Shown here piece after piece: positions 2,581 to 51,406 of a DNA stretch of 64,000 bases. The stretch's first letter is position 1. Every line of letters starts with the position of its first letter. Source of the stretch: Eutreptiella sp. 'Long Island Sound 2002' (taxonomy: Eukaryota > Protista > Euglenida). The translations under genes were made by a program, and so were the position numbers. The stretch lies in assembly GCA_964036045.1 (NCBI GenBank), contig OZ038379.1, positions 22,444,001 to 22,508,000 on the forward strand. Direction: 5' to 3'. The notes beneath the pieces were generated by a model, which was given only the letters and a program-made list of their open reading frames with translations, ran no database searches and had not been told where the DNA came from.

Positions 2581-5500
2581 CTTGGACCCTCTCGCCAGCT
2601 CCCATTTGACTGCGCACTATCCAACAAGGGCCATCACTCCACCACAGGCCCGGTCTGACTGTGGCTGTGGATAGGAGACAGCACACTGAACGGAAATGTC
2701 ACAGAGGCAGGCATGAGCAACACAGCAGGTGATGCTCTGAATGCTGTGAACGGGTCTGCTTTTGGCAATTCGAGCCACCAAAACCAAACTGCGAACTTGC
2801 AACTGGCAAAACTGAAACTGACAAGCATCATACAAAAGAATAGAACTGCAAGAGTCTCCGGATTGTAGATCAAATTTAATAAAATATTCTTCACACATTT
2901 TCGACCCTTTTTTTTTTGGCTCAGACCAAGATGAGCTGGCGTAGCCTGCTCACTTTACAGTTTTACAGTTTTACATTTTTGACCCATTTTGGGTCCCAAA
3001 ATGGCCCATTTTAAAGGCTTCTTTGTGCTTTTGGCGGGCAACGGGCTCACAACGGGGTGCAAACACTTGTTTGAGCATCCCAAGTGGTCTGGGAACAACT
3101 TTGGAGAAACTCACTGTTGACCCACTGCAGACCCATTTTGGCCCAGGCTGGGTGGGCTCCGTGTGCTGACTCGCTGGGGCCAAATGCGCACTGGTAGGGG
3201 GGGCTTGGTGTCTGTTTGGGCCATTCTAATGGGCGGAAACCACAAAAACAGTCCGTTCTCTGTGCCTGGGTGTGGGTAGAGACCCCGAAACCCTGCAGAC
3301 TGAGACGGGCGGGTGGTCCCAACTGGGGGGTTGAGGATGGCAGTCGGGGTGAGGGGGTCAACAAAAATGGCTCAAAAGGGTGAGTGCATCACGCTGGTCA
3401 TTCTTGAGTCATTGATGTGGGGGTGAAAAGTTTTATCAAAATTTTCTCTCCAGCGCTTTAGGCGCCCTGTTTTCAGGCTTGTTGCAGCCCAAAGTTTTTC
3501 TGGTGCATTAGGCCCCCAGTGTTCTAGTTAGCATTTGAGGTAGGTTGGGGGTTTCAATTAGGTGGTGGTGGGGGGGGGTCCGACATTGCAACGCTCTGCT
3601 TGGACCCACACTGGGGCATGTGCGTTGATGTGTATATCATGGTCTCATCATTGATATATTTCAGGGCAAACTGGCTTGAGCACTGATGCCCATAAAAAGG
3701 CGCCAACGTCCCGGGGACATACCTGGACACTGGTGATGCATTCCCAAGGATGCCCCTTCGTTCGGTGCGTCAATGCACTTCTCCGAGACACTGCGCATTA
3801 TGAAACCCAAGAGGTTTCTGATGGGGTCGAACCTGTGCCCTCGGCAAAGGAACCCTGGAGCACTACTGCATTGAAACTGCGAATGGTCCAAACCACATCT
3901 ATACAAACAAGAGGGAGATAATACACCATGCGAGGTCTAGATCAATGTCTACTGCACACTGCACAAATGTGGGCGTGGCATATGGCCACACTTGCGCAGC
4001 ACAGAGACCGCAACGGCTGTCAATTGGAGTGCACTGAAGTGCAAAGTATGGTTTGTGCCATTCTTGTTTACTCCCTCAAGCCTACGCTTTGGGAGCGGAC
4101 GAAGGGTTGTGAATGAGGGGAGGGGAATTTCAGTGAGCTACCCATACTTCTTCCCCCACAACAAAACCCACAAAGCCAGGCATTACAAGAGAGCAGGTGG
4201 TGTCGGTATGGACGGATGGGTGGGTGGGGGGGGGGGGGACGGGGCACAGGCGTTGGCTCTGGTTCTGGTGCTGGTGAACGCCAGACCCGCGACTCCCTGT
4301 GTCACGCCGTGGGCACAGCGGACCTGAGGCCAGGAGGCGTGGTGTTTGGTCTCAGGCCTTCGAATTCCTTCCCTCAGCCACTGGACCGAAGCTCCAGTCT
4401 GCACGTCCTCTCCAGTGTGTATCGGGGCTGGAACTGGCGACCTTCCGGCCGCCGCACCGTCCATCATGCCGCCAGGGCACCAAGTCAGGGATTTTGGTGC
4501 GGAGAAGGGGTGTGTGTTCGGCCCAGCACCCCCTCCTCCTCAGGTTGTCGGCCTGAAGGGCCGGAAGAAAAACTCAGCAGAAAACGCCGCGGAAACGTTG
4601 TGGCCCCGGGCCAAGAACACATTTTATTGCGAAAATCACACAGAAAATACCCGAGCCTGTTGTAAGAGCAGCAGGGGGGAGGGGTCAAGGGGAAGGAGGG
4701 TTCTGATTCTAGCTGATCCGGCCCTTTTCCGAGGGGAACGGGGTTAACCTACTCAGGGGGGGAGTGCACCCCCAAAAAGGGCACCTGAGGGTGGGGCAGG
4801 TCAGCCCCCCACCCCCACCCCGAGAGGGGTACTGAGGGCGGGGGAGGACTGATGTACATCGAAGAGAATTGGTTTGCATTGCATTCATGGAAGGAATGGC
4901 CTCGCTTGGTCGCTCGGTAGTCGCGTCGAGGTTGGAAAGGTCGAACACATGGCCCTTCATCACCACGGACGTTCACTACCCCACCATTGCCCTCCCATCG
5001 CTCGTTTGCGCCGTTCTCCCTTGACTCGTGGCACTCGACTGCTGGCGGCTGCTGCAAACCAGTCGGCTCACACCTGAACCTCGTGCCACAGATCTGCCGG
5101 CTGATCCACGAGATCCACGAGTACCACGAGTGCCAAGGGAAGCCTCCTGCGACTAGCATGGCCCAAGAGGCAAGCACAACGGGGCAAAGGGTGGGGGGTG
5201 GGGGCAAGGGCGACCATCAATACGCGATGCACAAATCACTGGCAATGTGAAGATATGTTGCGCTCAAAGCTCTCTACACTTCGATTTAACACTGTGGGAA
5301 ACTGGGCATGGCAGGTCAGGGGGGTCGTTTTGGGGCTCCTTGTGCTTGCATGGCTATGCCGCATAGCAGTGGTGAGCGTCTTGATGCAGCCTTGCAACCC
5401 TCGACAGGACGACTATCAGCCATTTCCATAGCATCCAGGCATCCAGGCCGTGTGGCAGGCGGGTTTTCCAGCACAGCAAAGCCCTACAAAGTGACCGCCA

Positions 5501-6085
5501 CTACCCCTCCCTTTCAGGGGCAGGTCCAGGACTCCTGTTCCAACGGCGGAGGTGTGCACCGGACCCTCATATTACGGAGGACAGGGCTGTGAAGTTGCGA
5601 AAAACGCTCCTTTTGCTCAATGGTTGGCCTGAGATGAGCCACGAGGAGGGCATGAGCACCGGCGAGAGCACGGCAGGGGGGGGGGGGGGTTGGACTGACT
5701 CGACGATGTCGGGTTACGGCAGTGCCTGGCTGGAATCCACGGGTACACACAACCATGAAAGGAGACGTAGACTGAAGCTCTTGCAGGTAACAACAGTGGG
5801 AAGTGCATAGAAAATGAGTGATCTCTAATGGCCGACGCTCTCAGAAGACCCAGTCGGGGAGATGCACTTGATGACTGACGTGCAGAGGTATGACCAAGCA
5901 ATGAACCAGCGATGCTGCGACTTGCTGAGTCCGACATGTGACTGCACTGTGAAGCTGATGTTGCTCTAAATAAGGGGAAGGAACACTGGATGCCGCCGCC
6001 ACGATATTGTGAAGGAGGGGGGCGGGCCGAAAACCAGACATCATGCGAAGAATGAGTACACACAGCTCATCACCCTGGGTCTGCC

Positions 6086-7141
6086 TCACGGCCTCTGCTT
6101 GTGGATGGCCACCACGTACTCGGGATACACCTGCCCCCCCTCATACACCACAAATTCTCGGTGGCATTGGACTGCCGGCGGGAGGATTGCCTGCGGATCC
6201 GCAAACACGGAATCATGAGGCAGGCCTTTCCGACGCAGCCCTGGACCACTGACCAATGGGGCACGGCGCAAGGCGTCTTCCCGCAAGCCCCTCGTCGCCT
6301 TGTACACATGCCCAAGAGTGACACGGCAGACCAGCAAACACTGTTGCCCACCCCGACTGAGGTCTGGCTTTGCATAGTGCCGCTGCAGGGCCTTGCACGT
6401 CTCGTCCGTGAAGTACACCCCGGCCCCATACAGCCCCCCCAGACGCGACAGCCGGGCGTCGAACCCCTGCTCCACGATCTTCGCCGCGTTGGCGAACGTC
6501 GTCCCGTGGAGCAGCAGGTACTCGTTGGTGTCCCCGTCCAGCTCGGCGCCGAAGGGATGGGGCGGGATGGGGAGCCCCAGCGCCGGGTACCTCGGGTCCT
6601 GCAGCAGCATCGCCCGCATTTCCTGCATGTGGGCCCGCGTGTGCTGGTACTGCCGCCACAGCACCGGGTTCTCCACACGCTCCACGCTGACCACCCGAAA
6701 GGGGTCGGCGATGGCCCTGCAGCGCGCGTTGCTCAGGCGACGCTCCAAGAACGCCAGCACCGCCGCTCTGTCATGCTCGCCCCGCATCTCGTACCGGAGG
6801 CCCCAGGCCCCCTGCCCCCCACGGGCCCAGCTCGGCGGCAGCGCCGGGGCCCGCGGCAGCCCCCGCCGCGTCTCCGGCCCGGACGCCGCGGCGGTGTCCT
6901 GCGCCAACTCCCGCAACGTCCGGCTCACTTCCGCCGCCGCCGGCCTCTGCATCGGGGCCGCGCTCTCCAAGCGCCTCAGCAGCGCGTCGAACTGCCCCCG
7001 CCCTCCCCAGCCCTCCGCCCCCCTCATGACGGCTTTCAGGACCTGCCCCAGGCCGAACACGTCGCTCTGCTGCGTCCGGTCGCCCCCGGCCTGCACCTCT
7101 GGCGCCACGAACCCCTCGGTCCCCCACAGCCGCCGCGTCGT
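6086..7141 (-). CDS. Last exon of ANK-kinase-PARP fusion: kinase C-lobe end (GTEGFVAPE, SDVFGLG) plus PARP/ART catalytic domain
   Basis: ORF 6086..7246: RVENPVLWRQY, LLHGT, GFDARLS, GLYGAGVYFT, LLVCRVTLG, HREFVVYEGGQVYPEYVV. Acceptor is a (CT)n tract plus CAG ending at 7142, phase 0; exon is 1056 nt including stop. Confidence 0.92.
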   Translation of the reverse strand, partial: TTRRLWGTEGFVAPEVQAGGDRTQQSDVFGLGQVLKAVMRGAEGWGGRGQFDALLRRLESAAPMQRPAAAEVSRTLRELAQDTAAASGPETRRGLPRAPALPPSWARGGQGAWGLRYEMRGEHDRAAVLAFLERRLSNARCRAIADPFRVVSVERVENPVLWRQYQHTRAHMQEMRAMLLQDPRYPALGLPIPPHPFGAELDGDTNEYLLLHGTTFANAAKIVEQGFDARLSRLGGLYGAGVYFTDETCKALQRHYAKPDLSRGGQQCLLVCRVTLGHVYKATRGLREDALRRAPLVSGPGLRRKGLPHDSVFADPQAILPPAVQCHREFVVYEGGQVYPEYVVAIHKQRP

Positions 7142-7905
7142 CTGAGAGAGAGGGGGGGGAGGGGGGAGAGAGAGAGACGAAGAGAAAGAGAGAGAGGGAG
7201 GGACAGAGAGAGGGAGAGAAAGAGAGAGGCTTGTGTCATTGGGCATTTAGGCGGTCTATGGCATGCAGTACCTCCTGTGCCCACTCTCTTGCTCTGTCCC
7301 CTGTGGCCATGCTCATGATGGTATACCCACCATGTTTCCATTTTGTAATCTTCCTCTGTACTTTGCTGGGGACCGTGGCCGTGGTGTACCAGATGTGCTG
7401 TGCTTGCCCTCCATGATGGCACGAAAGCATAGAGGCTCCCCAAAACTCGGGGCCTCTATCAGCTGCAGCCCACTCGCAGGCAGGCTGCCTACTCTGAGAT
7501 GCGTTGCCCATCCCCCTCCCTACACACTGCACACACGCATGTTCCACAGCCCTTTGGCTGCCCCCTTGGCTCTTGCACCCCATACAGCCGCCAATGGACC
7601 CATGGCAAGGGGACGGGCATTGTTACTTCCTCCCCCCTTCCCTGCATGTATGTGCACCTGTGATTGGTGCGCATCAGGGCCGCATATCTCTTGGCACAGG
7701 GTAGGGACCAATACAAGCATTCTTTTGTTGTGCTCTGGGTAGCCGTGTGCCACATATGCTGCCCCTGTAAGTGCATGACTTGCAGGCATGTGTGCCTTGC
7801 CGGACCTGTGCAGAGACTGTCCATAGCCGCCACCACCTCTACACTGGGCACTGCTGTGGGGTACAGGGACCACAGGACAATGGCACGCTTTTGCATGTTT
7901 TGTAC

Positions 7906-10347
7906 CTGCGTGCGGGCCCCGCTCTTTTGGGAGAACTCAAAGTCCGTGAGGCAGGGCTCTTCCTGGGCGTTGACCAGGACGTTCCCGCACGTGACGTCGC
8001 CGTGCACGTACCCCGCGCAGTGCAGGCACAGCAGCAGCTGCGCCACGCCCCGGCACATCTCCAGCCGACGGGATGCCGCCACTGCCGGCCCTGCCGCCGC
8101 CACCCACTGCCCGAGGTCATGCGGGTACAGCGGCATCTGCACGTACCCATTCCGGTCGTCACGGAAGACCGCCTCCATGGGGCAGATGCAGTGGTGGCGC
8201 AGCTCGTATGTCTGCAGGACCTCACGCAGGAACCGGCGCATCGCATCGTCATCTACCAATCGGAACTCCTTCAGGGCACACTTCCGGCCGGCAAACTCCG
8301 CCTCGAACACAACGCACCGGGAGCCCATGTGCCGCAACACCCGGTTCTCGTACATGTCGAAGGTGCGGGCCGGGTCGTAGAGGCCCTCGGTGAACAGCCG
8401 CGCCAGCAGGTCATCGCCGCAGTCGCCGTACACGTCCTCCATCCGCACCTCCGGAAAATGCGTCCGGGTCGCCGCCATCAACTCCGCGCTGGCGGTGAAC
8501 GTTTGTTGGACATTGGCGGCCAACCGCCCGCGCAGCCTCTTCAACTCGTCGTGGAGGCGATTCGAATCCTCCGCAGCACACCGCTCCCTCACGCGCCGCT
8601 TCAGCTCCTGCGCGCCCCACGCCACCTCCTCCTCCAGGCGCTCCTTTGCGGACTGCAGGACTCTGAGCTCCTCGATCCTGCGGCAAAACTCACCGTCCTT
8701 CGCTTTCCCGCCTCTCCAGGCCTCCATTTCCCCTGCCCTCTGCCGGGCGAGCTCCACCAGCAGGAGAAGACTGCGGGCCTCCATGTGGCACTGCCAGAGA
8801 TGGCGCACGATCCGCTTGCACACCACCAGCAAACCACATCGTCGGCGCCGGTGGTCTGCCAAAGCCTGTTCCAGATCCACCAGGACTGAGACCAGGGAGG
8901 TGCCCATTGGGCCCCTCCCGGCGTCCCCACAGCACAGCCCTGCGAGATCCTGAAACATCGCGGCGGTGCAAGCCAGAGCATCCTCCAAACACCGGGACGT
9001 CAGCCGCGCGCACACCCCATCCCGAATGTCCGCATCGAGGGCTGGCAGCCAATCTGCGTCGGGTCCCTCCCACCCAACCTCTGTGAATTCTGTTTCTGCC
9101 CCGGCCCCGGCCCCGGCCCCCGAGTCTTCGTCTTCCAACCAATCCCGGACCGTTTCGTGCGCCCGCCGCGCTGCGTCGGCCACGTGCCGGAGGCCCGCCT
9201 CCACTTCCCCGTTCCCGAGCCGCTGGTAGTGGTCCAGGCACTGGACCCGCAGACCGTCGCGTTGGGCCACACGCGCCTGCGTGTCCGCCCCCTCGGCGGG
9301 TGCGGCGTCGCCCAGCAGCCTTTGCAGCTCCTGGAGCTCCTGCCATGTGCTCCAGGCCTCATTCCCGAGGTCACGCAGCTGCTGAAACTCCGGAGCGCCC
9401 ATGCCGATGACATTGTCGAGGGTTCGATTCCCAGGGCCCCCACTGTCACAGCGGCCACCACCCCACAATAATTCACACACCGGGGCCCATTTCTGGCTCT
9501 CACGGACCTGATCCGCAGCTCTCTGCACCAAAGCCACGACGGCGCTCAGGGACAGGCCAGCGGCCTGGGACGTCCCACTTTCGAGCTTCTGCCGCTTCCA
9601 TGGGGGCTCATCATCGACGAGGGAGGGGGGAGACTCCGTGGGGCGCGAGCCGGATGTGAGGTCAGCATGGAGCCCAGCGTCATGGCCGGAGCCGGGGTCA
9701 GAGGCAGTGCCGGGGCCGGGGCTGAGGTTGGGATTGGCAGCGGTGCCGGGCACACGGCAGAGGTCAGCATTGGGACCGGGGCCAGGGTGTGGACCCCGAG
9801 CAGGACCGGGACTGGAACCCGGACCGGGATCGGGACCGGGGCTGGGGTCCAGGCCGGGCGCCGGAGCGACAGTAGGGTGCGCCCTCTCCAACAACGACAG
9901 AATCGCCTTTGATTTACCGGTCACGTAGTGGCGCGGCAGGCAGCCGTCGTCATCCTCCAGCGCCGCCGCCTGGGAGCCCGCCTCCAGAATGGCTTCGACC
10001 AGCCGGGCGTCCCCACGCATGCACGCGGTGTGCAGGGCCGTCCTCCCCCGCGCGTTGGGGCAATCGATCCACAGCACCGGGCCCCCACGGTACACCACTG
10101 TGTCGCCCCGGTTGCGCTGCCACATGCCCAACGCCCGGAAGAACGCCGCGGTGTTCCGCTTGTTCACCGACCGGACGGCGGTCTGCAAAGCGGTATCCCC
10201 ATCACCTTCCGCATTGGGAAGGCCCAGGCACTCCCGTCCCTTGTGCTCCATCAGCAGCTGGAAGATGGCGGTGGTGCCGCTGTACGCAGCCAAATGAAAC
10301 GCCGTCCAGCCGCGGGAGTCTTGGATTTTGGGGTCGACACCCACTTC
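7906..10347 (-). CDS. 2442-nt internal exon of ANK-kinase-PARP fusion: ankyrin repeats, Pro-Gly linker, coiled coil, kinase N-lobe to DFE
   Basis: ORF 7489..10353: GWTAFHLAA, GDTALQTAV, GRTALHTAC (ankyrin); CALKEF, FLREV, VHGDVTCGNVLV, LTDFEF (kinase). Acceptor tttttgcag at 10348, donor CAG|GTACAA at 7905, both phase 0. Confidence 0.92.
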
Positions 10348-12398
10348 CTGCAAAAAGGGATGGAGAAGAGGGAAGGACCTCAGCTTGGCCCGGATACGGC
10401 ATGGGGTACATCATAACCATTATGTTTGTATGCGTTCCTGTTTCCCTCCCAATTTTGTGGACCCTGATATTGCAGGGGATACACAGTAAAATCCAGGCCC
10501 AATTCTCGGAATGGAGTCTTGTAACTCTGGAAGTGGAACCCACGAACCCCAACCTGCCCTGAGGAAAAAGAGCAAGCAGAGCCGGCTGCGGATCCCTGTT
10601 GACGGAAGCACCTGCTGAAGCCGAGGGTTGCGCGGTCTCTGCATTTGGAGAAGTGAGGATCCTACTGAGTTACTGTTGTGAAGCGGACAGGCATTGCCGA
10701 GCAACGTGTCGGTTGCAGCTGATTCCTGACAACATCAGGCACTGAGCCTTCCGTTCAGGAATTGTTGATTTCACAATCCGAAATTTCGTCATGCGGGCCT
10801 CCAGCACAGCTCCCCACCACTTCCCACTTCTACCAGACACAAACACGCAGGTATCACATCCCTCTGCCGCTGTTGTAGCGAACAGGCTTTTGTGTAATGA
10901 CCCCCTGAAGAGGAGTGCGCTACTCTCGGCTTTTGCATTTTGGATCTCTGGCAAACCCACCCAACCACCCACTGAACCCCACCATATGGTGACATGTGAG
11001 CTGTCACATGTGTGGTGTTGTTTGAGACGGTGTTAGCACAACAGGCAGCGCATGCAGATCACAAGAGTGAAAGAAAAGCTTGTCAAGAGCCGTAAACGGC
11101 CCGAGGAACCTTTCGCAAGAAGGTCTGTGGGAAGCGTATGCAGAGTGACCTCAATGCGCGAGAAAGAGGGCAACATCATCGTCGCATCAGAAGTAGTAAT
11201 TGTACAACGGCAGACGGCACAGGCATACAAACATGAACTGCTGCGGAGGCCAGAAACGCCGGCAACAAACAAAACCGGACAGCCCCAGGCACTGCCCACG
11301 TGTCTGTACCACAGTACTGCAGTACCCCTCACTCCGAGGGTGGGGCAACAGAACCTCTGCCATCACCGACCAATGTGTTCATCGCATCCTGAAGAAGAAG
11401 GGCGCTGCCCTTGCACTTCTTCCAGCCACAGTGCTTTGGGACGTCCTAGTGTTCCCGGATTTCCCTGGAACGATCGCTAATGATCACCCCACATTCATGG
11501 GTCAAGACACAGCAGTGGCCATAACAAAGTGGGTACAAAGAGTGCTACACGCAGCAGCAGGACACAATGGCTCGGAACACTGTTCAATATTCGGAAGAAG
11601 GTGGACGGTTGTCCAGTTCTAGCAACCCACCCAACAAGCGCCCCCCCCCCCCCCCGCAAGACTCAACTCTCATCGCCTACTGCACCAAACCGTATGTTCA
11701 TCGTTCACATCCTGCTACCAAGCTATCATTCACTTGTGCCCCCCCCTCCTGGCGTGGGGGGTACTATTTTCTCAACATTGCTGAAAATGGGGGATCCACC
11801 CACCAAACCTGAGACCAGCCTTTCCACGCATGCACCTCACACAGGTTCGGCTCAACGGCCACGCTGATCAGTTTTGAGTCGTTTTATGTTGTGGTGAGCC
11901 TGTCTGCCGAACCGTTTTCTCCGGCACCTTCTGCGCCCTGTTTTCCCTGTTGACATACCAATGGCTGTGGTTGGGGGGTCCGCAGGGTGGAGTTGGGGCC
12001 GGGGGGGGGGGGGGAGTAAATGAATGGTTGGTGATACTGGAGGTCCTGCCCAAACACTTCCAATCAGGAGATGTGTCTACTATACATTCTGCATCGACTG
12101 AGGTCTGCTAGAGGCTACAGCAAACAACCGACTTCAGGAAATCCATTTGCAACACCATATGGAAGCTGCCTGAGACCTTGGATTCCCTTCATCCAGACTC
12201 AAGATGACCGAGCCCAGCAAATGGCGAAGGCAACCCCCCCCCCCAAAAAAAAACACTACAACCAAAGTGTAAAACATACTGATCCTGGACTGTCCGGCAT
12301 CTCATCGTTTGGGAAAATTGGTTTAGCACAGTATGAATGCTTGGAGGGAAGGTCGGACTCTACACCTCAGGGCCCCCGTGACCACCTGTCAAACAAAC

Positions 12399-13040
12399 CT
12401 CAATCAGGAAGCGCACTGCCTCCAGACTGAAGGACTTCTTGTGGACACTGTGGAGGCCATGATGAAGGAGTGTTTGGCCGTGGTGGCCCCCATTGGCGAA
12501 GGCTGGGGCGTTCATGTCCACGGACGCCTGCCTGAGAAGGTTCACAACATCCTGCCACTCCCGACAGCCCAGATCACACCCGTCTGCTTGTAGTAGGTAC
12601 CACAGTGGCCCATGACGGTCCTGGCACTGAAGGGTTGCGTCCAGAAGGGGGTGTTCGAGGAGAGTCCGGCAAAGATCCAGCCTCCCGTGTTGGCATGCGT
12701 GCATCAGAGCCGTCATGCCCCGGTGCCCACGGGCGTTGACGTCGGGCGTCTTGAGAACTAGGGCGTCAAACAATGCGGGGGGTGCGCCCTTTGTTGCGAG
12801 GATCAGGGCTGTGTTGCCATGATCTCGACGCCCTGCGGGACCTGCAGAGCGCAGTGTAAGGTCCGCACCAAAATCCATGAGGAGCTTGAATACCCCCTCT
12901 GTCTTGGGGAGCTCCAGGGATGCTTGCAGGAGTGGACTGAGGCCCGCGTAGACCGCCTCACAATCCACTCCCGCCTGAAGGAGGAGATTGGCACAGTGCA
13001 CGTGCCGCTGCACATCCGCTTCCGGCTCCTCGAGTACATT
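12399..13040 (-). CDS. Internal exon of ANK-kinase-PARP fusion: ankyrin repeats
   Basis: ORF 12360..13112: GLSPLLQA, GNTALILA, GMTALMHAC, GQTLLHHG. Acceptor ctctacag at 13041, donor GAG|GTTTGT at 12398; 642 nt, phase 0/0; joins FLIE|EVGVDPK. Confidence 0.88.
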
Positions 13041-14179
13041 CTGTAGAGAAATGATGGCTGAGGTTTGGTGGCGTAGGGTTATGGCATGTGTGATGGGATA
13101 GAGGGATGGCATGTGTGATGGTGCAGCATGATGGCATGTGACAGGGTATAGAGTGATGGATGTGTGATGGTACGGAATGATGGCTGGTGCAATGGCACCC
13201 TTGCAACACGATGCAACGTTCAGACGTAATGCACATACAAATGCAGGCAGTACGAGAGCATCGAGTAACTAAGGACCCAAGGAATGACGTTTTCCCCATA
13301 GCTTGTTCCAACACGTTACGCGGTGCGCACGCAGTGCAAGTCATCCCCTTCAGGACTGGTGGATGAACAAAAAAAAAACTTAGACAGCTCTGAACCTTGA
13401 TCCTGAGAAGTTCTCTCAAGCACATCTCATCCCCCATCTAGCGAGCAGGTCTGGGTGTGCACGTACCAACCGTCTCAATGGTCTCATGGCAATCCCTACG
13501 ATGTTGACGTGTCCTCATTGCCATGCTCACGGCGCCGCTTCTGTTTAGCACATACCGCCCAGCATGCGGCAATTCATTCTTCTTTGCAACACGGGCCCAA
13601 CAGTCACCCATTGATACCCTTCAACGTGTGCAACCACCCATGCCTTTTCTTATATATATGGTGGGGGGTGGAAGCCGGGGCCAACAAATCCACTTTTCGA
13701 GCCGACCCACAGCCAATGGCCCACCCCCACGAATGGGGGGCTCAGCTCAGGACCCGCCCACCCACCCACCCACCAATCAAAAATTTCTTTCCTCACCTCC
13801 GTGAGGAAGAAAGGAACTTTTTTGATAGAGGCGAGCAAAACACTCACCTTTGTGGAATGGTGCCAACAAAAATGAGCAAACGATACAACAACGGTGTAAC
13901 TCACCCACTTTTCTTTAAATCGATTGCTTGTGAGTAAAGAAAACGATTCCACACACCAATGCGGTTGTGGTCTATCCGAAATTTGGTTTGCCATGTGGCT
14001 GCCTATGGTGGTGTGTCCACGGCTCTCACATAAATGCATGCCTTTGGTGTAATGGTTGCTGTTGGTTGAGCCGTTCCAAAGGGTTTCAAGGGCAAAGGGT
14101 TGTAGGGACATTGGGGCATGGGGACACAGTGGCATATATTCCTTTAACTACCAGGTACGGGGTGTGCACCGGTACCCTC

Positions 14180-14645
14180 AAAAACGCACTCAGGGGAACC
14201 GGGCTTGCTGCACGACGTTGGCGACGACAGTGTTGGGAAACGTTGGGGACGCTGGGGAACACGTGTACCCGGATTTTGTACCGGCATACCCACATTCTAG
14301 AACGTTCTAGAACGTCGGGGAACACATGTGCCCGCATTTTGTACCGGGTCGCACCCGGACGTTCCGGAACGATGTAGAACGTTCCGGAACACGGGAACAC
14401 ATGTACCACATTTTGTACCTAGTGGTACCCACATTCCGGAAGGCTGTGGAACGTCAGCAACACATGGGAACCACGTGTACGCGTGTTTCGTACCCGGTAA
14501 CACACATGTTCCCCAACACGCTGCTCGTCGAGAACGTCGAGAGCGACGAAGAACGTGTTGGGGAACACATGGGAACATGTGGAGGGAACATGGGGGAACA
14601 TTTTCCATTTCACATGAAAAACATGTTTTTTGCGGGTACCTGGCA
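14180..14645. repeat. Palindrome-dense short repeat element in intron
   Basis: Recurring ~60-65 nt units (ggaacacatgt..cattttgtacc...acattc/gttc) packed with ACATGT, GGTACC, TCTAGA, TCCGGA and AACGTT. Confidence 0.6.
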
Positions 14646-14770
14646 TTTTAAATGGTTTCAGCACACTCAGAAACCCCCTTTGACAACATAAAATGGGGGG
14701 GTGATGTAACGCGTTAGGGCACATTTCAGGCGGTAGCTAAAGGAATATGCAAAGGGCCATAGGGTCATAC

Positions 14771-15161
14771 CATCGCATCGAGGACCACATGCAATGGAGG
14801 GGGCACGGTGTGGATGTTGGCCTTCAAGGCAAGCAGCTCTTGTAGTACGGAGACGGATGCAAAATGGGCTGCTTCCATCAAGGGAGTACGTCCATATTGG
14901 CCTTTGGCGTCCAGGTCGGCCTTTGCCGCGATGAGAGCACGTGCTACGTGCAAGTGGTCGTCAATCGCTGCGTAGTGCAACGGCGTGTCGCCATTTGCAT
15001 CCCGTGCATTGACATCCTCCCCACCCCGAATCAAGGCACGGACAGCATCGATGTTGTCAACCGCATCATGCAGTGCCATGCAGCCAATTGCAATTTTGCT
15101 ACAAACGTGACAAGCAGGGCAGCACCGGGCAGAGCCATGGCCAATACCGGAACCCAGGTCC
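14771..15161 (-). CDS. Upstream exon of ANK-kinase-PARP fusion: ankyrin repeats (5' boundary uncertain)
   Basis: ORF 14765..15232: DVNARDANGDTPLHYAA, GRTPLMEAA. Donor ATG|GTATGA at 14770, phase 0, matches the acceptor at 13041. Acceptor gtgttcag at 15162 (alternative near 15100). Confidence 0.8.
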
Positions 15162-17029
15162 CTGAACACTACAAACACAAACGCTCTCTTTATGGACATA
15201 TGGGGGCACAAGGAACGGATGGCTAGGGCCACGGATTGCTAAGCCGGGGGGGGGGGGGGTGGAGGGGTCTCGGAGAGGGAGTCGGGGGGTTTGGTTGAGA
15301 AAAATACCCACCACCACCAAAGTGCACCCCATGTGCCCGAAAGCCTACACCTTTGCCTTGCCCTGCAGAAATGGTGACAATACACTACTGGAGTTGTGCG
15401 TCTTCATCAAAACATGTAGTGCCCTTTGTTGTTTTAGATCAGCACTGGCTGCAAGGAAAGCAAGTGGTGGGTGGGGCACACACAGCACATCGCGATGTAG
15501 CGCGCCAGCTACCTGTACTAACTTGTTGATCTGCAGCATAGTTTGTGTAAAAAGCAGTGTGCATGTTGTCTACAAAAGATGTTTAAAGATGCAACGAAGT
15601 TGCAAGCACAGTGATCCTCACTTTTCCCCAAAACATGCTTTTTGCGGATAGCACCCTTTGTTGTGAAGCAAATGGCACAATGACCACATACACAATCTTG
15701 CCCCCAGGCTTCTTAGCTTCAGAAATAATTATCATACTCACAGATCATTCTGCATCATGGGAGGGCATATGGATTGATCCCTGTGGGTTCCCTCCAAAAT
15801 GCACTCCTGGAATACAAAACTTGGGCAGTCTGAGGCAGATGCAACCGCTTGCGCATAAGTTCCTGCAGACTGCTTTCGTTGCAAGGCATCAACACTGAAC
15901 AAATAGCAGCACACATGCAATGCCTCCTCATGCTGTCTTGGCACAACGGCACGGGGGAGCAGCAAAGAGCATATCTCTCTGGGACGTTCGGAATGGTGCC
16001 AACACGGAGCGTTTTCAGGGGCCGGTGCCATTGTTGCCTCATTTGTGCCCGCCGAGTGTCCCAGAGGGGGGGTATGTGGGGTATATTCGGAAAGCCCTTG
16101 AAAAGGGCTTTTCGGAGATGTATTGGTTAGGGGGGGGGGGTCCGGAACCATATTTTTTCGAAAATTGGCCGTTACCGTTGACAGGTTGGGTTTCTTTTGC
16201 CTGTTCTGGTCTGGTTTCAGACAGACTGCACCGCACCCCTACTCCCATTACTCCAACATATGGGCATATGAGGGTCAAGTCATTTGGGTGGATTTGTTGC
16301 ATTTGATGTGTAGAAGACATGTGCAACATGGGTCCCCTCAAGAGGCCAATAAGTTGAAGACTTTGACCAATAACTACCTTGGACACCTGGATGATGCCTG
16401 GTGCAACTTGCAGCATCAAGCTCACCAGAGTGCAAGAAATCAAAGATGGCAGAATTTCTCAAACAGGCTGTCAAGCTGGGACATGAGACTTCAATATTTG
16501 GATTCAGCACGTCAAAACGCATCCACTTATCTCCTTTCACTTTCCTCCAACTCCACAATATGTCGGAGCACCCAGGGGAACACCTATGAGTTGGTGTCCC
16601 GCACGCGTGTGTAGAGCAGCCAGAGGCCCGAAAACCCTGAAACGCCGAAAAGTTCGGCCTCGGTACTCAAAAATATGGTCACTTATTCCCCCTTTACCCA
16701 TACATTTCTGAAACGGCCTTTTCTCACAGATTTCAAAAAGTTTTCCCTTTAATCTTCAATAATATGAATAAACACGAATATCAGCAGCACATCGCCAACA
16801 CATACCCCTACGCATACCCATTCGCTGACCCGTTTGTAACCCTCTGTGCCCCCACACCAGTCAGCTTTACGGTCCCTCTCGACAGCTACACTCCCCACCT
16901 CAACATGTCTACTGCCCCCTACAAACCCCACCCCCCTTCCCCTTCCCCAAATGAGTCCAAAAACCAAGTTTTTTATTTTGATTACCTTTTGGCAAGCACT
17001 TTCCCCAGTTTGACCTGCACCTTCTCCTA

Positions 17030-21580: not shown

Positions 21581-22780
21581 CTAAGTGTCATGCCTGTTGT
21601 GTTCTAACATGGAAAGGTCACCGAAGGAATGCAAAATTGTGGTGCGGGTTTTCGGGTGAACTACAGAGGTTGATCGTGGATAGGCGGTATCAGGCAGAGC
21701 CTCTGGGCGCGTCCCGTGCTGCATAAACAGCAGCATTTTTTGTCTCGCCCATTGATGCCCGCACTGGTCCATTGCAGGAGAAACTAGCAAGACCGCTTCA
21801 GGTGCATACATACTCACTACCTCCTTTATCAGCCGCGTGCACACGTCCCGCCACGTCGGTGCTATCTCATCTTGCATGACTACGGGTGTTCGTGTACCAT
21901 GCTATACTCCGCTGAAATCTTCAATGTAGCTGCCGTCAACGCACGAGAGCGAGTACCAGGCTCCCTCAGCCGAGGTAATCCTTCGAAGCGCAAAAAGGCC
22001 ACCGTACAGCTCGGCTTGCAACTTTGGGACACTCAACCTCTGCGTGGCGAGCTGCGCTGGGTTTCGTGCCGGCGTGGCATGTGTGTCGCCGGGCCAGGGG
22101 CTGTGATACATTGCCCCTGGCCCCCGCTCCTGCTGCGCCGTGGCATGCCTTGACGCGAGGCGCTCTGCAAGGCGGCGGTCCCCCATCACGGCCATTGTTG
22201 CCAGCTTGCTATCCTTCCATTCCGCGAGGGGACCAAAGTCCACGTCCGCAAACGCGCAGACAGTGCTCGCACTGGGGACAGTGTCGAGTCTGATCCAAGA
22301 GCTCGGACCGTCCTCTCGCGCTGTCCAGCGGATGAACTGTCCGAAAAAGCGCACCTCCCCACGGGACCACTCACTGAGCGAGCCGACGAGCGGAAGCGGA
22401 AAACGTCTTTGCTCGCGCTCCGCTGCAATCATGTGTTGCGCAAACTCAACTTGCTGTCGGAGCACTGAGAGGGCATCATCAGTGCCACAGAGCGCGGGCG
22501 GCAGCTCGCCGTCAAAGAAGCTTGTCAGGAGCGGCTCCCAAAGTGCGTGTTGTCGAGACGGGGAGTGAAGCGCCCAACAGACGCTACTGAGCCGCACCAG
22601 AGGGAGCTCATCGAGAAAACCGAAAATGACGAGCAGCGTGTTTGCGTCCAGAGTTGCGAGGCCTGCAGGTGCCCTCAAGCCGGTCTCCGACACTCGTGCA
22701 CCTAATTGGCTCTTTTCAACACCTGTCTCGCTCCCCTCTGCAGGTCGAGCGATGTTGCACTCGGCCGCCCGTTGTGCCAT
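21581..22780 (-). CDS. Intronless F-box protein: 292-aa ORF (21902..22780) followed in frame, after one TAG, by 106 more codons
   Basis: F-box motif LATLDANTLLVIFGFLDELPLVRLSSVCWALHSPSRQHALWEPL; junction GTA TAG CAT GGT ACA CGA ACA CCC GTA GTC ATG CAA keeps the frame into ORF 21581..21877. Confidence 0.7.
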
Positions 22781-24871
22781 GGCTCAAAATCCGTTGGCCC
22801 AGGTGGGCAATCAAAGCATACAAAATAACACTTGTGGGCACAGATGGCCAGACACTAGAAAAGCAGATGTCCATGACTTGACATAACGTGCAGATTCATC
22901 ACCAACTCCCTATTTCATGTGGCCGCCTTACATTTGATACCAAATTAATTTAGGTCCCAAGGCAATACGGTCCCTACGTCTGCTGTGAGCAAGGCTGTAA
23001 CCACAACACGAAGGCGGTGCGGTGCTCTACACCCCACCCTAGTAGTAGCCCCTCGAGCCGAAGGTGGTGTTGGGGCTCGGCTTGTGACCCCCGCCCGCCC
23101 TTGGTGCTTATAACAGGTAGGAGTCCAGTACCAAGACCTGGATTTTAGCCCCCGCCACCTACTTGCTTAGGCTGTCAAGACCATCCCTTCTAAGAGCTCG
23201 AACCCTACGCCGTGGACATGGCACCAAAACCCAAGATCTCCAAACAGTCTCGCTAAACGTGCAGTCACATCAAAATTCGCCGCCTTCATGAATATGGTGC
23301 TGCACTTGCATCGCCTGAACAGTCAGGACACTAAGAACGACATGGACCACAACCCTGACGATTGGTACCCCCAGCCGCCCCCAGCCGAGAGACGCCCAAT
23401 TCAGCTCTGCGGAAGGTATGCGAAACGCATCTTCGGTCACAGGGCACCCCGCCGAACAGCAGATCCAGATTGTGACCAAGGATCAGACCAAGAGGCAACC
23501 CAAATAGGAGCCCGTAGCCGCCGAGTCGCAGCCCACAGGATACCAGGTGGCCCCGACCAACCAAGTCGACAGAGCCCCTGCAAAGGAAGGGCTGGTGCTT
23601 TAGGGTTTGTCATGGATCGGTGCAGAAAGCGCTTTGGCCGAGCTGCCCTTTCCGTCTTCCTTCCACGGAATTCATTCGTTGGGCCACGTTGGGATTCTCA
23701 CTTGCCCACGCAATTTACAACGTCAGTTTTCATTTGATAAACATCCAATGATCCTGGCTAGATCCTGTTCAGTATTGTCTTTCGGCACGTGCGATCAGTC
23801 ACAATGGAGGCATGACCCGTCGAAGGGGTGCGCGTGCAACTATGGTCCACATTGATTGTTTCGTTTACGTGCAGCCTTTTGCAGTCGCAGGAGGTTAACA
23901 TTGGAATGGGCACCACAGAAAGCGAGTGAAATGAGCCCTTGTCTCGACTCAAGAAGTGGCCTGGATAGTGAATGCAGGGGGTGGGACGTGACCATGCAAA
24001 GGGGAACGACTGGTTCTTTCGCAGGGAGGCAGATCGCCCAACCTCGACAGACCCATCTACGTGAGTAATGGCTGAGTGATGTAACGGGCCATGGTACGAC
24101 TACTGGTTCAGTTGATGGACTGTAATGAGCCAACAACAACCAGCAAATCTCAACCACAAAGCAAGTATCCCTGCAGGGCATTGAGAAGATGGGGGATCGA
24201 GAAGATATCTCTCAAAATGGGTGCACAAGCTCCAAGGCAAAGGGTCAAAATATACAAACCATCTTAGTAACACCTTTCACCAAAAGTACTGAACCCCGCA
24301 ACCCGCGCAGGATCATAGCCCTCACTAGATGCGGGTCGGCATGTACTGAATGTTGCAAAGAACCATTTTGTAACACCCCCGTTTTGGACCCCTCTTTAGA
24401 AAACAACAGTGGTTACCCCAACCCGGAACACACAGGGAGGTATTTCACTACGTAGTTATGGGGCTACCCGATGACATGGACGCAGTGGTGCTAAGCTTGA
24501 GTGATAATAGAAGTGGGCGTCTGGTCCTCGTTTGCGCACCCACAATTGTTCTCATTTAGAAATTCCCCATTGCACTGTACTTGTTGTGCAATTGGGCCAG
24601 AGCAGTCGTGGGAGACAAGGGCAGGGACACACCCATTGCAAAAATTAAAAGGCTGGTAAACCCCGAAACCATGGGTCTGGACCCACCACAGCGTAATCCC
24701 CCCCGTCCCCAGCCCCTGCCCTCCCGCCCATGGAATCCCCCGCAAGAAAATACCCAGTCTTATATCCATCCCTTTGTCACACTGCTGAAAATTCGGTTGC
24801 AATGGTGTGTATTCATGGCATAACTCATGGACATCTCCCACATCCATCAGCACATCTGTTTGCATAGAGCA

Positions 24872-36542: not shown

Positions 36543-37106
36543 CTAATGGTCCTTCTTGCTGTCATACCATGACTTGATTGCAGGGATGCTGTACATCCGC
36601 TCCATCCACTGACCTACCTCAGGATAAGCCTCGAGACAATTCACAGGCACATGCTCTGCAGTACCGGATTGGAAGTAGCGCAGCTGGGGCAGCAGCTGGA
36701 GGTCCGCAATCGTGGGCTCATCGCCACACAGGAACGCCCCCGTTTCCTGCAAATGGTCCGAGATATACCCCATGAACCGCGGCATGTCCTGCGCGACGAA
36801 GCGCTCTCGAAGGGTCTTGACGATCTCGGCCTTGGCCTCAGGGCTCATGTCTGAGGGATGCCCGAACCGCTCCGGATACATGTTGATGTAGATGCAGGGC
36901 TGCCAGGCACGGGCTATGTCGTCCGACAGTCCGAGTAGGCTTTCTACTTCCAGCATCTGTTTGGGGTCGCTGGGGTACAGAGAGCCGTCCCCGAAGCTCC
37001 TGGCGACATAGCGAAGCATCGCAGGGCTCTGGAAGATCTCCTCCCCGTTAATCGTCATCATTGGCACTTGGCCATACTTTGTCATGGGCTTGTACTCGCC
37101 CCACTC
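36543..37106 (-). CDS. GST: Glutathione S-transferase (sigma/prostaglandin-D-synthase-like), exon 2
   Basis: EWGEYKPMTKYGQVPMMTINGEEIFQSPAMLRYV (GQVP and QS glutathione-site motifs), FLCGDEPTIADL; acceptor aatcag at 37107, phase 0; stop at 36543. Confidence 0.93.
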   Translation of the reverse strand, partial: EWGEYKPMTKYGQVPMMTINGEEIFQSPAMLRYVARSFGDGSLYPSDPKQMLEVESLLGLSDDIARAWQPCIYINMYPERFGHPSDMSPEAKAEIVKTLRERFVAQDMPRFMGYISDHLQETGAFLCGDEPTIADLQLLPQLRYFQSGTAEHVPVNCLEAYPEVGQWMERMYSIPAIKSWYDSKKDH

Positions 37107-37499
37107 CTGATTGGGACAGGGCAGGTGTGGGGGCTGGGATGGGAATAAGGACACCTGACAGTCCCAAGGGGTAGGAGTACAGATAAGGATACCGGGCAGG
37201 GCTCCAAAATGTGTTCAGGGCAATAAAATTGGGCGGCCTGTTTGGTAGAAAGACGGGGGCAGCCAGGGGAAATGAAAGGGAAATGGCGAAATACAGACAA
37301 CCGGCGACGCTTAATTTCCTCCTACCATCTGCCACCAAATGAACAGGAGGAAGAACAGGGGAACAAACTGACGGGGGACAATGGAGGAGAATAGGGTAAC
37401 TTTGGCTGTTGCCTCTGCCAAATCTTCCCGAAGTTCCCATCTGATTCACTACTTACTCCCCTCCTGCATTTTCCCTCGTTTGTACTGTGACTGTAGGTG

Positions 37500-49610: not shown

Positions 49611-50261
49611 GACCGCATCTCCTCCTCCGCCTCCTCCTCTGTGCAGTGTGTTGTGTTGCGTTGTGTTGTGTGCAGCGTGTTGTGGTGGTTGTGTTGCGGT
49701 GTGGTGGTATGGTGCGTTGCGTGCGAAGGTTTGGGCCAGGGCTTTGCTTTAGCGGGGAGAGGAGGGGATAAGGGGGTGCACGTCGCCCACTACCTGCTGC
49801 CGGAAGGTACCTAAGCTCCAACAAACCCGAAAAACTCATGTACAATGACATGCCATTGTTTCTTAGAGTAAGGGGCAACCACTGAACCTGTTTGCTCCCT
49901 GAGCTATCGCTGTGGCTTGACTCCCGCAGCAACGGGGAAGACGATGACACCCTCTCGTCGTTGATGCACCAACAGCCGCCGTGGCCACTAGCGGCCAACC
50001 GCTGTCAGTTGACAGCTGTGCCGTACCTTGTACACTGTGCGTGCAGATCACATGATGCACCTGCCGGTCACGGGGTTTTCCTCCCAAATACGGTCCTTGT
50101 GGGGTGATTTTGCACCGGTGGGTGGTGGACTAACCATTTGTCAGGGGTTACAGTGGGGAAAGAAAGGACTGCGCCGCAACGAAGCGCAGTTTGCGGAAGT
50201 TTCAAACACACTCTTTGGCGGCTGCATTGTTTGAGCAAGGGCTTTGTGTTGAGGGGTACAC

Positions 50262-50512
50262 CTCAAGACACGTACTTCGTGGCGCTGGCCGATGCGATGC
50301 ACCCGCTGAATGGCCTGATCATCCACCGCCGGGTTCCACCAGGGCTCCAAGAGCACAACCTGAGTGGCAGCTACCAGGTTGAGCCCCACACCGCCTGCCT
50401 TCAGAGACACTACGAAGCACTGAACTGCAGGGTCCGTGCGGAAAGTGTCCATGGCGCCCTGGCGCTGTGCAATGGACTGCGACCCGTCAAGGCGAACATA
50501 GCGAATGGAATG
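50262..50512 (-). CDS. RAD5: RAD5/HLTF-like helicase exon (helicase C, motifs V-VI)
   Basis: [52 protein letters not shown]; acceptor ccgcag at 50513, donor AG|GT at 50261; 251 nt, phase 0/2. Confidence 0.93.
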
Positions 50513-51406
50513 CTGCGGATAATGCGAAGGGCGTGCGGGCGAGTGGGAGGGGTCTGCGAAGGAGATGTGACGGAGGCACGGGTGTGCGATAAGGTACCAG
50601 GGGCCAGATATGGGGTTTGCTGTGATCTGTCGGGGGAGGAGCATGTGAGACCAGGGCTTACACAGGGAGGGAATGTCAAGTCTGATCCCTGCACCAAAAG
50701 GGGCTCTGCATGTGCTGAATGCCAAACGGATCACTTTATGCATGCCGATTTGAAGGCGGGGCGTTGATAGAGGGTCATGTCTCCAGAGCTGTATCCACTA
50801 CATTCCACAAAACGGACAGAAACACCAAAAGGCATAATAAAGACCAAGTAATCCAAAATGCCAGCAATTAACAAAAAAATAAAAAAAACAAAAAAAAAAG
50901 TACCACAACAACACAATTCAAAGCAACCTGTCATCTTCGACACCTGCACGAAGTCTGCGATGCTTCAACTTCAAGGGGCGGTGGCATGGGCGCAAGCGGT
51001 ATGTGTCTGGAGCGCACGCTATTGAATGCATGGCAACTTGCATCACTTCTGGGGCAACGTCTCCTTCAAACACTGCAATCCTGGCTCCCTGGGCTGCAGG
51101 GGGCGAGAAAAGAGGCTTCCTCTTTAACAATAAATGGTCAACAGCAAATGGTCCTGCAAAACAGTGATACCCCATGATAACCAACTGTGATCATGATCAT
51201 TTGCCCATGCACGGGTGCGTAGTCATGCATGTGCCCATGCGGCTCCAATTGGGAACCAGCGTCGACATTTTGTCCTCATATCTGTGCCTGAAACCCAGTA
51301 CCTTCAATGGCAACGATGATGCAAAAAGGATGGTTGCCCAGGGAACACTGTTGGTACGTAGGCCCTATCCCCTCATCCCCGGACTTCCCAAACTCCAGGC
51401 AGCCAC

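Follow-up and report, generated by a model that had tools for sequence, protein, structure and literature searches.

Gene structure and domain organization

The window analysed here is a stretch of 64,000 nucleotides from Eutreptiella sp. 'Long Island Sound 2002' (assembly GCA_964036045.1, contig OZ038379.1, positions 22,444,001 to 22,508,000 of the forward strand), a euglenid with a genome of 2.28 Gb. Its minus strand carries a gene of four exons (15161–14771, 13040–12399, 10347–7906 and 7141–6086) that is a real, transcribed nuclear gene. The predicted product combines ankyrin repeats, a protein kinase domain and a C-terminal PARP-type ADP-ribosyltransferase domain and is the ankyrin-bearing member of a widespread kinase–PARP family, of which no description was found in the literature. 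An earlier note on this DNA, made from the sequence alone, had proposed four exons joined in frame through GT-AG introns. All of these borders were found, with AG before each exon and GT after each exon except the last, and exons 2 to 4, whose lengths are multiples of three, are translated without a stop codon (Table 1). Exon 1 required a correction, as 15161 falls on the third position of a codon and the ankyrin frame therefore runs from 15160 to 14771. The first in-frame ATG is located at 15079; counted from there the protein comprises 1,482 residues, where the note gave approximately 1500. An out-of-frame ATG is present upstream of it at 15138, and the AG preceding 15161 may serve as acceptor for a spliced leader or for a further exon upstream. 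The frame remains open past the donor at 7906, with the GC content of third codon positions (GC3) falling from 0.88–0.90 to 0.64–0.68, which fits the end of an exon and entry into an intron.

Searches and structure predictions were performed exon by exon. The Pro-Gly linker, long helical region, kinase fold and C-terminal ADP-ribosyltransferase domain of the earlier note were all detected in that order behind the ankyrin array. Pfam recognized ankyrin repeats in exons 1 and 2 and over the initial 140 residues of exon 3 (2e-14). Counting by eye yielded 12-13 repeats instead of the roughly 10 of the note. Exon 3 then continues with the Pro/Gly/Ser-rich linker (residues ~158-250) and the helical region (residues ~251-660). 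For these ~400 residues neither a Pfam family nor a neighbour in the ESM Atlas was found, and residues 231-555 have no paralogue in the host genome. A single-sequence structure model was all-helical with several helices of 40-64 residues; since its predicted local distance difference test score (pLDDT) was 42, we describe this region as helical and no further. Its last ~100 residues, predicted to form long helices, are common to other kinases of the genome and to a kinase–PARP paralogue on chromosome 5. This end of the region is probably a coiled coil, and the pre-kinase coiled coil thus seems to belong to the kinase subfamily.

Table 1: Features of the ankyrin–kinase–PARP gene in the window.
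Feature	Position	Strand	Remarks
Exon 1	14771..15161	-	Ankyrin repeats 1-3 and first half of repeat 4; AG acceptor 15162-15163; Ank 1e-18
Intron 1	13041..14770	-	GT..AG; GC 0.51
Exon 2	12399..13040	-	Ankyrin repeats 4-9; Ank_2 2e-17
Intron 2	10348..12398	-	GT..AG; removal seen in RNA
Exon 3, first part	9877..10347	-	Last ankyrin repeats, about 9-13
Exon 3, linker	9598..9876	-	Pro/Gly/Ser-rich, low complexity
Exon 3, helical region	8368..9597	-	No recognized relatives; last ~100 residues common to paralogous kinases
Exon 3, end	7906..8367	-	Kinase N-lobe through DFE motif
Beta-3 Lys	within 8263-8280	-	Kinase N-lobe
Alpha-C Glu	within 8218-8232	-	Kinase N-lobe
HGDVTCGN	within 7981-8007	-	Catalytic loop
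DFE	within 7930-7947	-	In place of DFG
Intron 3	7142..7905	-	GT..AG and polypyrimidine tract; divides the kinase domain
Exon 4, start	6887..7141	-	Kinase C-lobe; APE, D..G and RP motifs present
Exon 4, PARP-type ADP-ribosyltransferase domain	6089..6844	-	Stop codon 6086-6088
His212 (exon 4 numbering)	codon 6506-6508	-	Triad
Tyr243 (exon 4 numbering)	codon 6413-6415	-	Triad
Glu329 (exon 4 numbering)	codon 6155-6157	-	Triad
Probable 3′ untranslated region	5600..6085	-	RNA contigs at 5600-5841 and 5872-6114 (contigs not strand-resolved)

The PARP domain

The Pfam PARP domain (PF00644) was identified at exon 4 residues 147-346 (3.2e-19, above the curated cut-off) and starts ~15 residues past the end of the kinase C-lobe. 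AlphaFold2 modelled exon 4 with a pLDDT of 85.5 using an alignment of 48 sequences; a look-up of exon 4 in the ESM Atlas gave no usable match. The best solved matches obtained with Foldseek were the catalytic domains of tankyrase 1/2, PARP10 and PARP15 (probability 1.00, target-normalised template modelling score (TM-score) 0.74-0.86). Both the H-Y-E triad and the G.G.YF motif, which binds nicotinamide adenine dinucleotide (NAD+), are present. The 48 relatives all share His212 and Tyr243, and ≥90% of them conserve Glu329; all three residues align with the triad of tankyrase-2. In front of the catalytic part lies an N-terminal extension that carries the motifs P..W and RVEN..LW..Y; a helical regulatory domain of the PARP1 type is lacking. 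Judged by these residues, the domain is a predicted ADP-ribosyltransferase with intact NAD+-binding and catalytic positions.

The kinase–PARP family

An exhaustive profile search with exon 4 against 1.84 billion representative sequences retrieved 2,878 PARP relatives. A kinase domain precedes the PARP domain in 21 of the 149 best representatives, and a word search seeded with P0109 added 8, placing the kinase–PARP cassette in at least 29 protein clusters of public data. Named sources are Rigifila ramosa (CRuMs; P0122), the dinoflagellates Abedinium folium and Yihiella yeosuensis, the prokinetoplastid Apiculatamorpha spiralis, the diplonemid Rhynchopus euleeides (P0181) and MMETSP transcripts; several members are single open reading frames on assembled transcripts. 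The N-termini vary: WWE (P0012, 1582 aa), leucine-rich repeats (P0184), CCCH, Not3 and cold-shock domains (P0074, an MMETSP transcript), 22 DUF4116 repeats (P0098 from Apiculatamorpha), or nothing recognizable. None of the other kinase–PARP members contains ankyrin repeats, and the sole ankyrin–PARP protein of the set (P0041) lacks a kinase.

The protein encoded in the window has the features by which we define the family, namely a kinase with H[GC]D and DF[DE] motifs directly before an H-Y-E PARP domain in one polypeptide, and it shares the short linker with P..W and the reduced glycine loop. It differs in the ankyrin repeats and the helical region, which occur only here, and its identity to the other members is 30-40%. 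These data demonstrate that kinase–PARP is a conserved two-enzyme cassette of several protist lineages, each with a different binding module in front, here ankyrin. The kinase–PARP fusion is consequently not a singular case. The statement of the earlier note that no characterized ankyrin–kinase–PARP protein is known still stands for the complete architecture, since no such protein, characterized or not, was found elsewhere, while the kinase–PARP part recurs. When exon 3 was used as query in word-index protein searches, once with residues 1-816 against at most 8000 candidates and once with residues 560-813, only the open reading frame of the window itself was returned; E-values scaled to database size probably hid distant kin in both cases, and these negative results carry little weight. 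A tree of the PARP domain with 160 rows left the deep branches unresolved and placed the query alone on a long branch. Because of this lack of depth, and because many of the rows without a kinase are fragments, the tree cannot separate one origin of the fusion from several.

At least 22 loci with a PARP domain and varied partner domains were detected in the host genome, helicase–PARP and WWE–PARP genes among them. Two are further kinase–PARP genes. One, on chromosome 5 at ~144.01 Mb, has the C-terminal part of the kinase and the PARP domain in one open frame; the other lies on chromosome 22 at ~3.57 Mb. In the latter (locus L026, G000:C22:3567000-3576999, ~1635-2125) the PARP domain changes frame between ~2125 and ~2009, which reflects either a short intron or a frameshift. 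At another locus (L009, G000:C17:38392486-38393052) the PARP domain ends an open frame with a reported length of 6,142 residues, and the PARP locus L003 follows a UvrD/AAA_12 helicase C-terminal region.

The kinase domain

The Pfam Pkinase profile matched exon 3 residues 679-809 (5e-9) and exon 4 residues 5-82 (1e-3), covering profile positions 14-148 and 157-242, respectively, so that a kinase fold with both lobes is present. Both halves are collinear with P0005, a kinase–PARP homologue in which the domain is uninterrupted, and with the family alignment. Throughout the family the catalytic loop reads H[GC]D.K..N, DF[DE] replaces DFG and the glycine loop is reduced to G-R-H/C-x-V; APE, Asp/Gly and Arg of the C-lobe are conserved.

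The kinase of the window retains the beta-3 Lys, the alpha-C Glu, the catalytic Asp and Asn, the Asp of DFE, APE and the C-lobe Asp and Arg. Together with the finding that most family members keep every catalytic residue, the loop lysine included, this argues for an active enzyme, and the protein might then phosphorylate as well as ADP-ribosylate partners bound to its ankyrin repeats. We regard such a double activity as a tentative alternative only, as the full catalytic set of eukaryotic kinases is not present: Thr stands in place of the catalytic-loop lysine and has no basic residue in its vicinity, the glycine loop is down to one Gly, HRD is changed to HGD and DFG to DFE. P0005 and the chromosome 22 paralogue have Ser at the position of the lysine. 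Owing to the loss of this residue the kinase domain may be regulatory, and on balance we favour a regulatory or weakly active domain, as read from these motifs.

A profile built from the kinase domains of the family had PDB entry 9gmp_A, annotated as 'Uncharacterized protein (Map kinase kinase-like protein)', as its best solved match by far (6e-57 versus 1e-47 for the next). This chain of 285 residues likewise shows HGD and a reduced glycine loop but consists of the kinase domain only and has DFG where the family has DF[DE]. A publication on 9gmp was not found in the literature search.

Composition and origin of the gene

The earlier note had suggested recent assembly or acquisition of the gene from the contrast between its long GC-rich exon and the short exons of a neighbouring RAD5-like gene. 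The helicase in question is situated ~35 kb away, and long frames rich in GC are the norm among kinase and PARP genes in this host, with a GC content of 0.54-0.68 and GC3 of 0.62-0.76. A young chimera, formed by horizontal transfer or by exon shuffling within the euglenid lineage, would explain why ankyrin, kinase and PARP occur together nowhere else and why exon 3 residues 231-555 lack a paralogue. GC3 also rises along the gene (0.58, 0.66, 0.80 and 0.87 for exons 1 to 4). The change is not located at a domain border, though, as GC3 amounts to 0.83 even in the ankyrin part of exon 3. Moreover, the gene contains three GT..AG introns of the spliceosomal type, its composition resembles that of other long host frames, and the cassette has two host paralogues as well as relatives in other Euglenozoa. 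For these reasons horizontal acquisition was rejected and a recent chimera of either kind appears improbable, while addition of the ankyrin module alone within the euglenid lineage is plausible and possible.

Transcription and exon junctions

RNA contigs from three estuary metatranscriptomes were placed over window positions 5600-11599. Contigs without mismatches (100% identity) were restricted to exon 4, exon 3 and the sequence past the stop codon (5600-6114), and none was found in intron 3. Intron 2 was covered by mismatched contigs only, at about 10987-11180. Many RNA and DNA contigs align to this short element with mismatches and with overhangs at either end; it is probably a multi-copy repeat whose transcripts come from other loci. 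In metatranscriptome X1, one contig joins 10309-10349 directly to sequence starting at 12401, the end of exon 2. As the two ambiguous bases fit both sides of the join, the removal of intron 2 corresponds exactly to the model.

In this placement, neither 7906|7141 nor 14771|13040 is spanned by a read, and GC3 increases from exon 1 to exon 4, as might be seen if the ankyrin and kinase–PARP exons belonged to different transcripts or exon 4 were a separate gene. Such a mis-joined model is nevertheless very unlikely. Exon 3 is a single open frame from the ankyrin repeats to the kinase N-lobe and is bridged to exon 2 by an RNA contig; intron 3 has no RNA contig; and half a kinase cannot fold alone. 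When the 175 residues of the exon 3 tail were aligned with P0005, the last residue aligned, 174, paired with P0005 residue 108, and residue 1 of exon 4 paired with residue 110. The two exons therefore abut exactly in the uninterrupted homologue, with nothing missing or added. Further indirect support for the exon 3/4 junction comes from the division of the kinase domain, the canonical borders and the polypyrimidine tract. Since the kinase C-lobe and the entire PARP domain share one open exon, the kinase–PARP fusion itself does not depend on splicing. A search of the host genome for processed copies crossing the exon 3/4 junction returned only the gene itself, and a search for the dinoflagellate spliced-leader pattern gave a match at chance level only.

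One further run (X7, type unrecorded, with a different organism label) contains intron 3 and was for this reason read as DNA. Relative to the window it carries two substitutions in exon 3, at 8044 and 8404 (C>A and C>T), which indicates that a second strain or close species carries the gene.

A decayed pseudogene was rejected in view of the intact frames, the GC3 of 0.80-0.87 and the transcription. A patchwork partial copy of the 3′ end of the gene, interrupted by stop codons, was found elsewhere in the genome (L025, G000:C24:115000-124999, ~4358-7008). A piece resembling window positions 5379-5046 (93%) adjoins one resembling 6503-6374 (87%), and ~1.9 kb further on follows a piece resembling 6379-6073 (99%). 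The last two pieces share a 6-base overlap, as would a target-site duplication around an insertion. This copy suggests that the 3′ untranslated region extends at least to 5046.

Comparison with tankyrases and other PARP enzymes

Tankyrases 1 and 2 share with the protein N-terminal ankyrin repeats, a C-terminal minimal PARP domain with H-Y-E and the lack of a helical regulatory domain; moreover, among solved structures tankyrase-2 matches the PARP domain best in sequence (3e-12) and ranks with the best in fold. A divergent tankyrase orthologue with a kinase in place of SAM is nevertheless very unlikely and was rejected, since SAM and the zinc-binding loop are lacking and the repeats match generic repeat proteins best. 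In tankyrases five repeat clusters are followed by SAM and the PARP domain carries the zinc loop, whereas here 12-13 apparently generic repeats precede the helical region and the kinase, which occupy the position of SAM. Pfam scans of exons 3 and 4 gave no match to a SAM domain, and in the alignment to tankyrase-2 the zinc-binding Cys/His loop faces gaps and query residues other than Cys or His. The best solved matches of the exon 2 repeats are Kidins220, designed repeats, ankyrin-1/2 and RNase L, and of the 239 solved-structure matches to this exon, the 60 listed include no tankyrase chain. Among PARPs, the closest relatives come from protists and are linked to a kinase, WWE or a helicase. 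The expression 'tankyrase-like' used in the earlier note is hence a loose analogy only.

PARP domains of mono-ADP-ribosyltransferases of the PARP10/PARP14/PARP15 type are equally good fold matches (target-normalised TM-score 0.78-0.86) and have the P..W and RVEN..LW..Y extension in common with the domain described here. At the position of the catalytic Glu, enzymes of this type carry Ile or Leu; the Eutreptiella protein, in contrast, retains the Glu.

Neither of two broad PARP surveys mentions a kinase-linked PARP (PMC2964712; PMC4245714), and the same holds for a 2026 survey of fungal PARPs and a review of conflict systems. A literature search for kinase–PARP fusions and for Euglena PARPs, covering sources outside subscription journals, found nothing.

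Proposed function

Taken together, the locus probably represents one expressed gene whose product consists of an ankyrin array, a disordered Pro/Gly-rich linker, a helical region with a probable coiled coil, an atypical and likely regulatory kinase domain, a linker of ~15 residues and an H-Y-E PARP domain, and for which the following mechanism is proposed. The ankyrin array would recruit protein partners or substrates. The coiled coil might dimerize or oligomerize the protein, a role played by SAM in tankyrases. The PARP domain would transfer ADP-ribose from NAD+ onto itself and onto the bound proteins, where polymers and single units cannot be told apart from the sequence. The neighbouring kinase-like domain would regulate the PARP domain or add a second modification; having lost the loop lysine like its two nearest relatives, it would most likely be a nucleotide-binding or regulatory partner rather than an efficient kinase.

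Several points weigh against this interpretation. Bud32 and RIO kinases also lack the catalytic-loop lysine and are still functional, and the kinase domain may be active despite its loss. H-Y-E is necessary but not sufficient for polymer formation. No relatives of the helical region were recognized, and confidence in its predicted structure is low. Neither the 7906|7141 junction nor that between exons 1 and 2 is crossed by an RNA contig, the contigs having been placed over 5600-11599, and the RNA data are short assembled environmental contigs rather than strand-resolved reads.

Like the protein proposed here, RNase L and IRE1 carry a kinase-like domain beside a C-terminal effector in one chain, and in those proteins it controls the effector. 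RNase L in addition has N-terminal ankyrin repeats, which match exon 2 at 3e-9. Their effector is a KEN ribonuclease and not an ADP-ribosyltransferase, and as evidence of homology goes no further than generic ankyrin and kinase folds, we draw this likeness as an analogy only. A bolder, rather doubtful idea would be that an old protist cassette couples phosphorylation or nucleotide sensing to ADP-ribosylation while its N-terminal modules are swapped, so that in euglenids ankyrin would sense, the coiled coil would oligomerize and a pseudokinase would gate a polymer-forming PARP. If true, this would be RNase L-like logic with ADP-ribosylation as output. A role of the ankyrin–kinase–PARP protein in stress or defence signalling is speculation.

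The family matters more than the single gene in one genome. PARP enzymes are classed largely by their accessory domains, and a kinase–PARP cassette recurring in Euglenozoa, dinoflagellates and CRuMs, in which the H-Y-E triad is conserved and the recognition modules can be swapped, would add a class. It would also provide a natural setting in which to study how phosphorylation and ADP-ribosylation interact in one polypeptide.

Neighbouring reading frames

Three further frames were recognized on the minus strand of the window. A Helicase_C frame at 50144-50797 is probably the RAD5-like gene of the earlier note, a glutathione S-transferase frame is located at 36546-37214, and a weak F-box-like match was obtained at 21905-22783.

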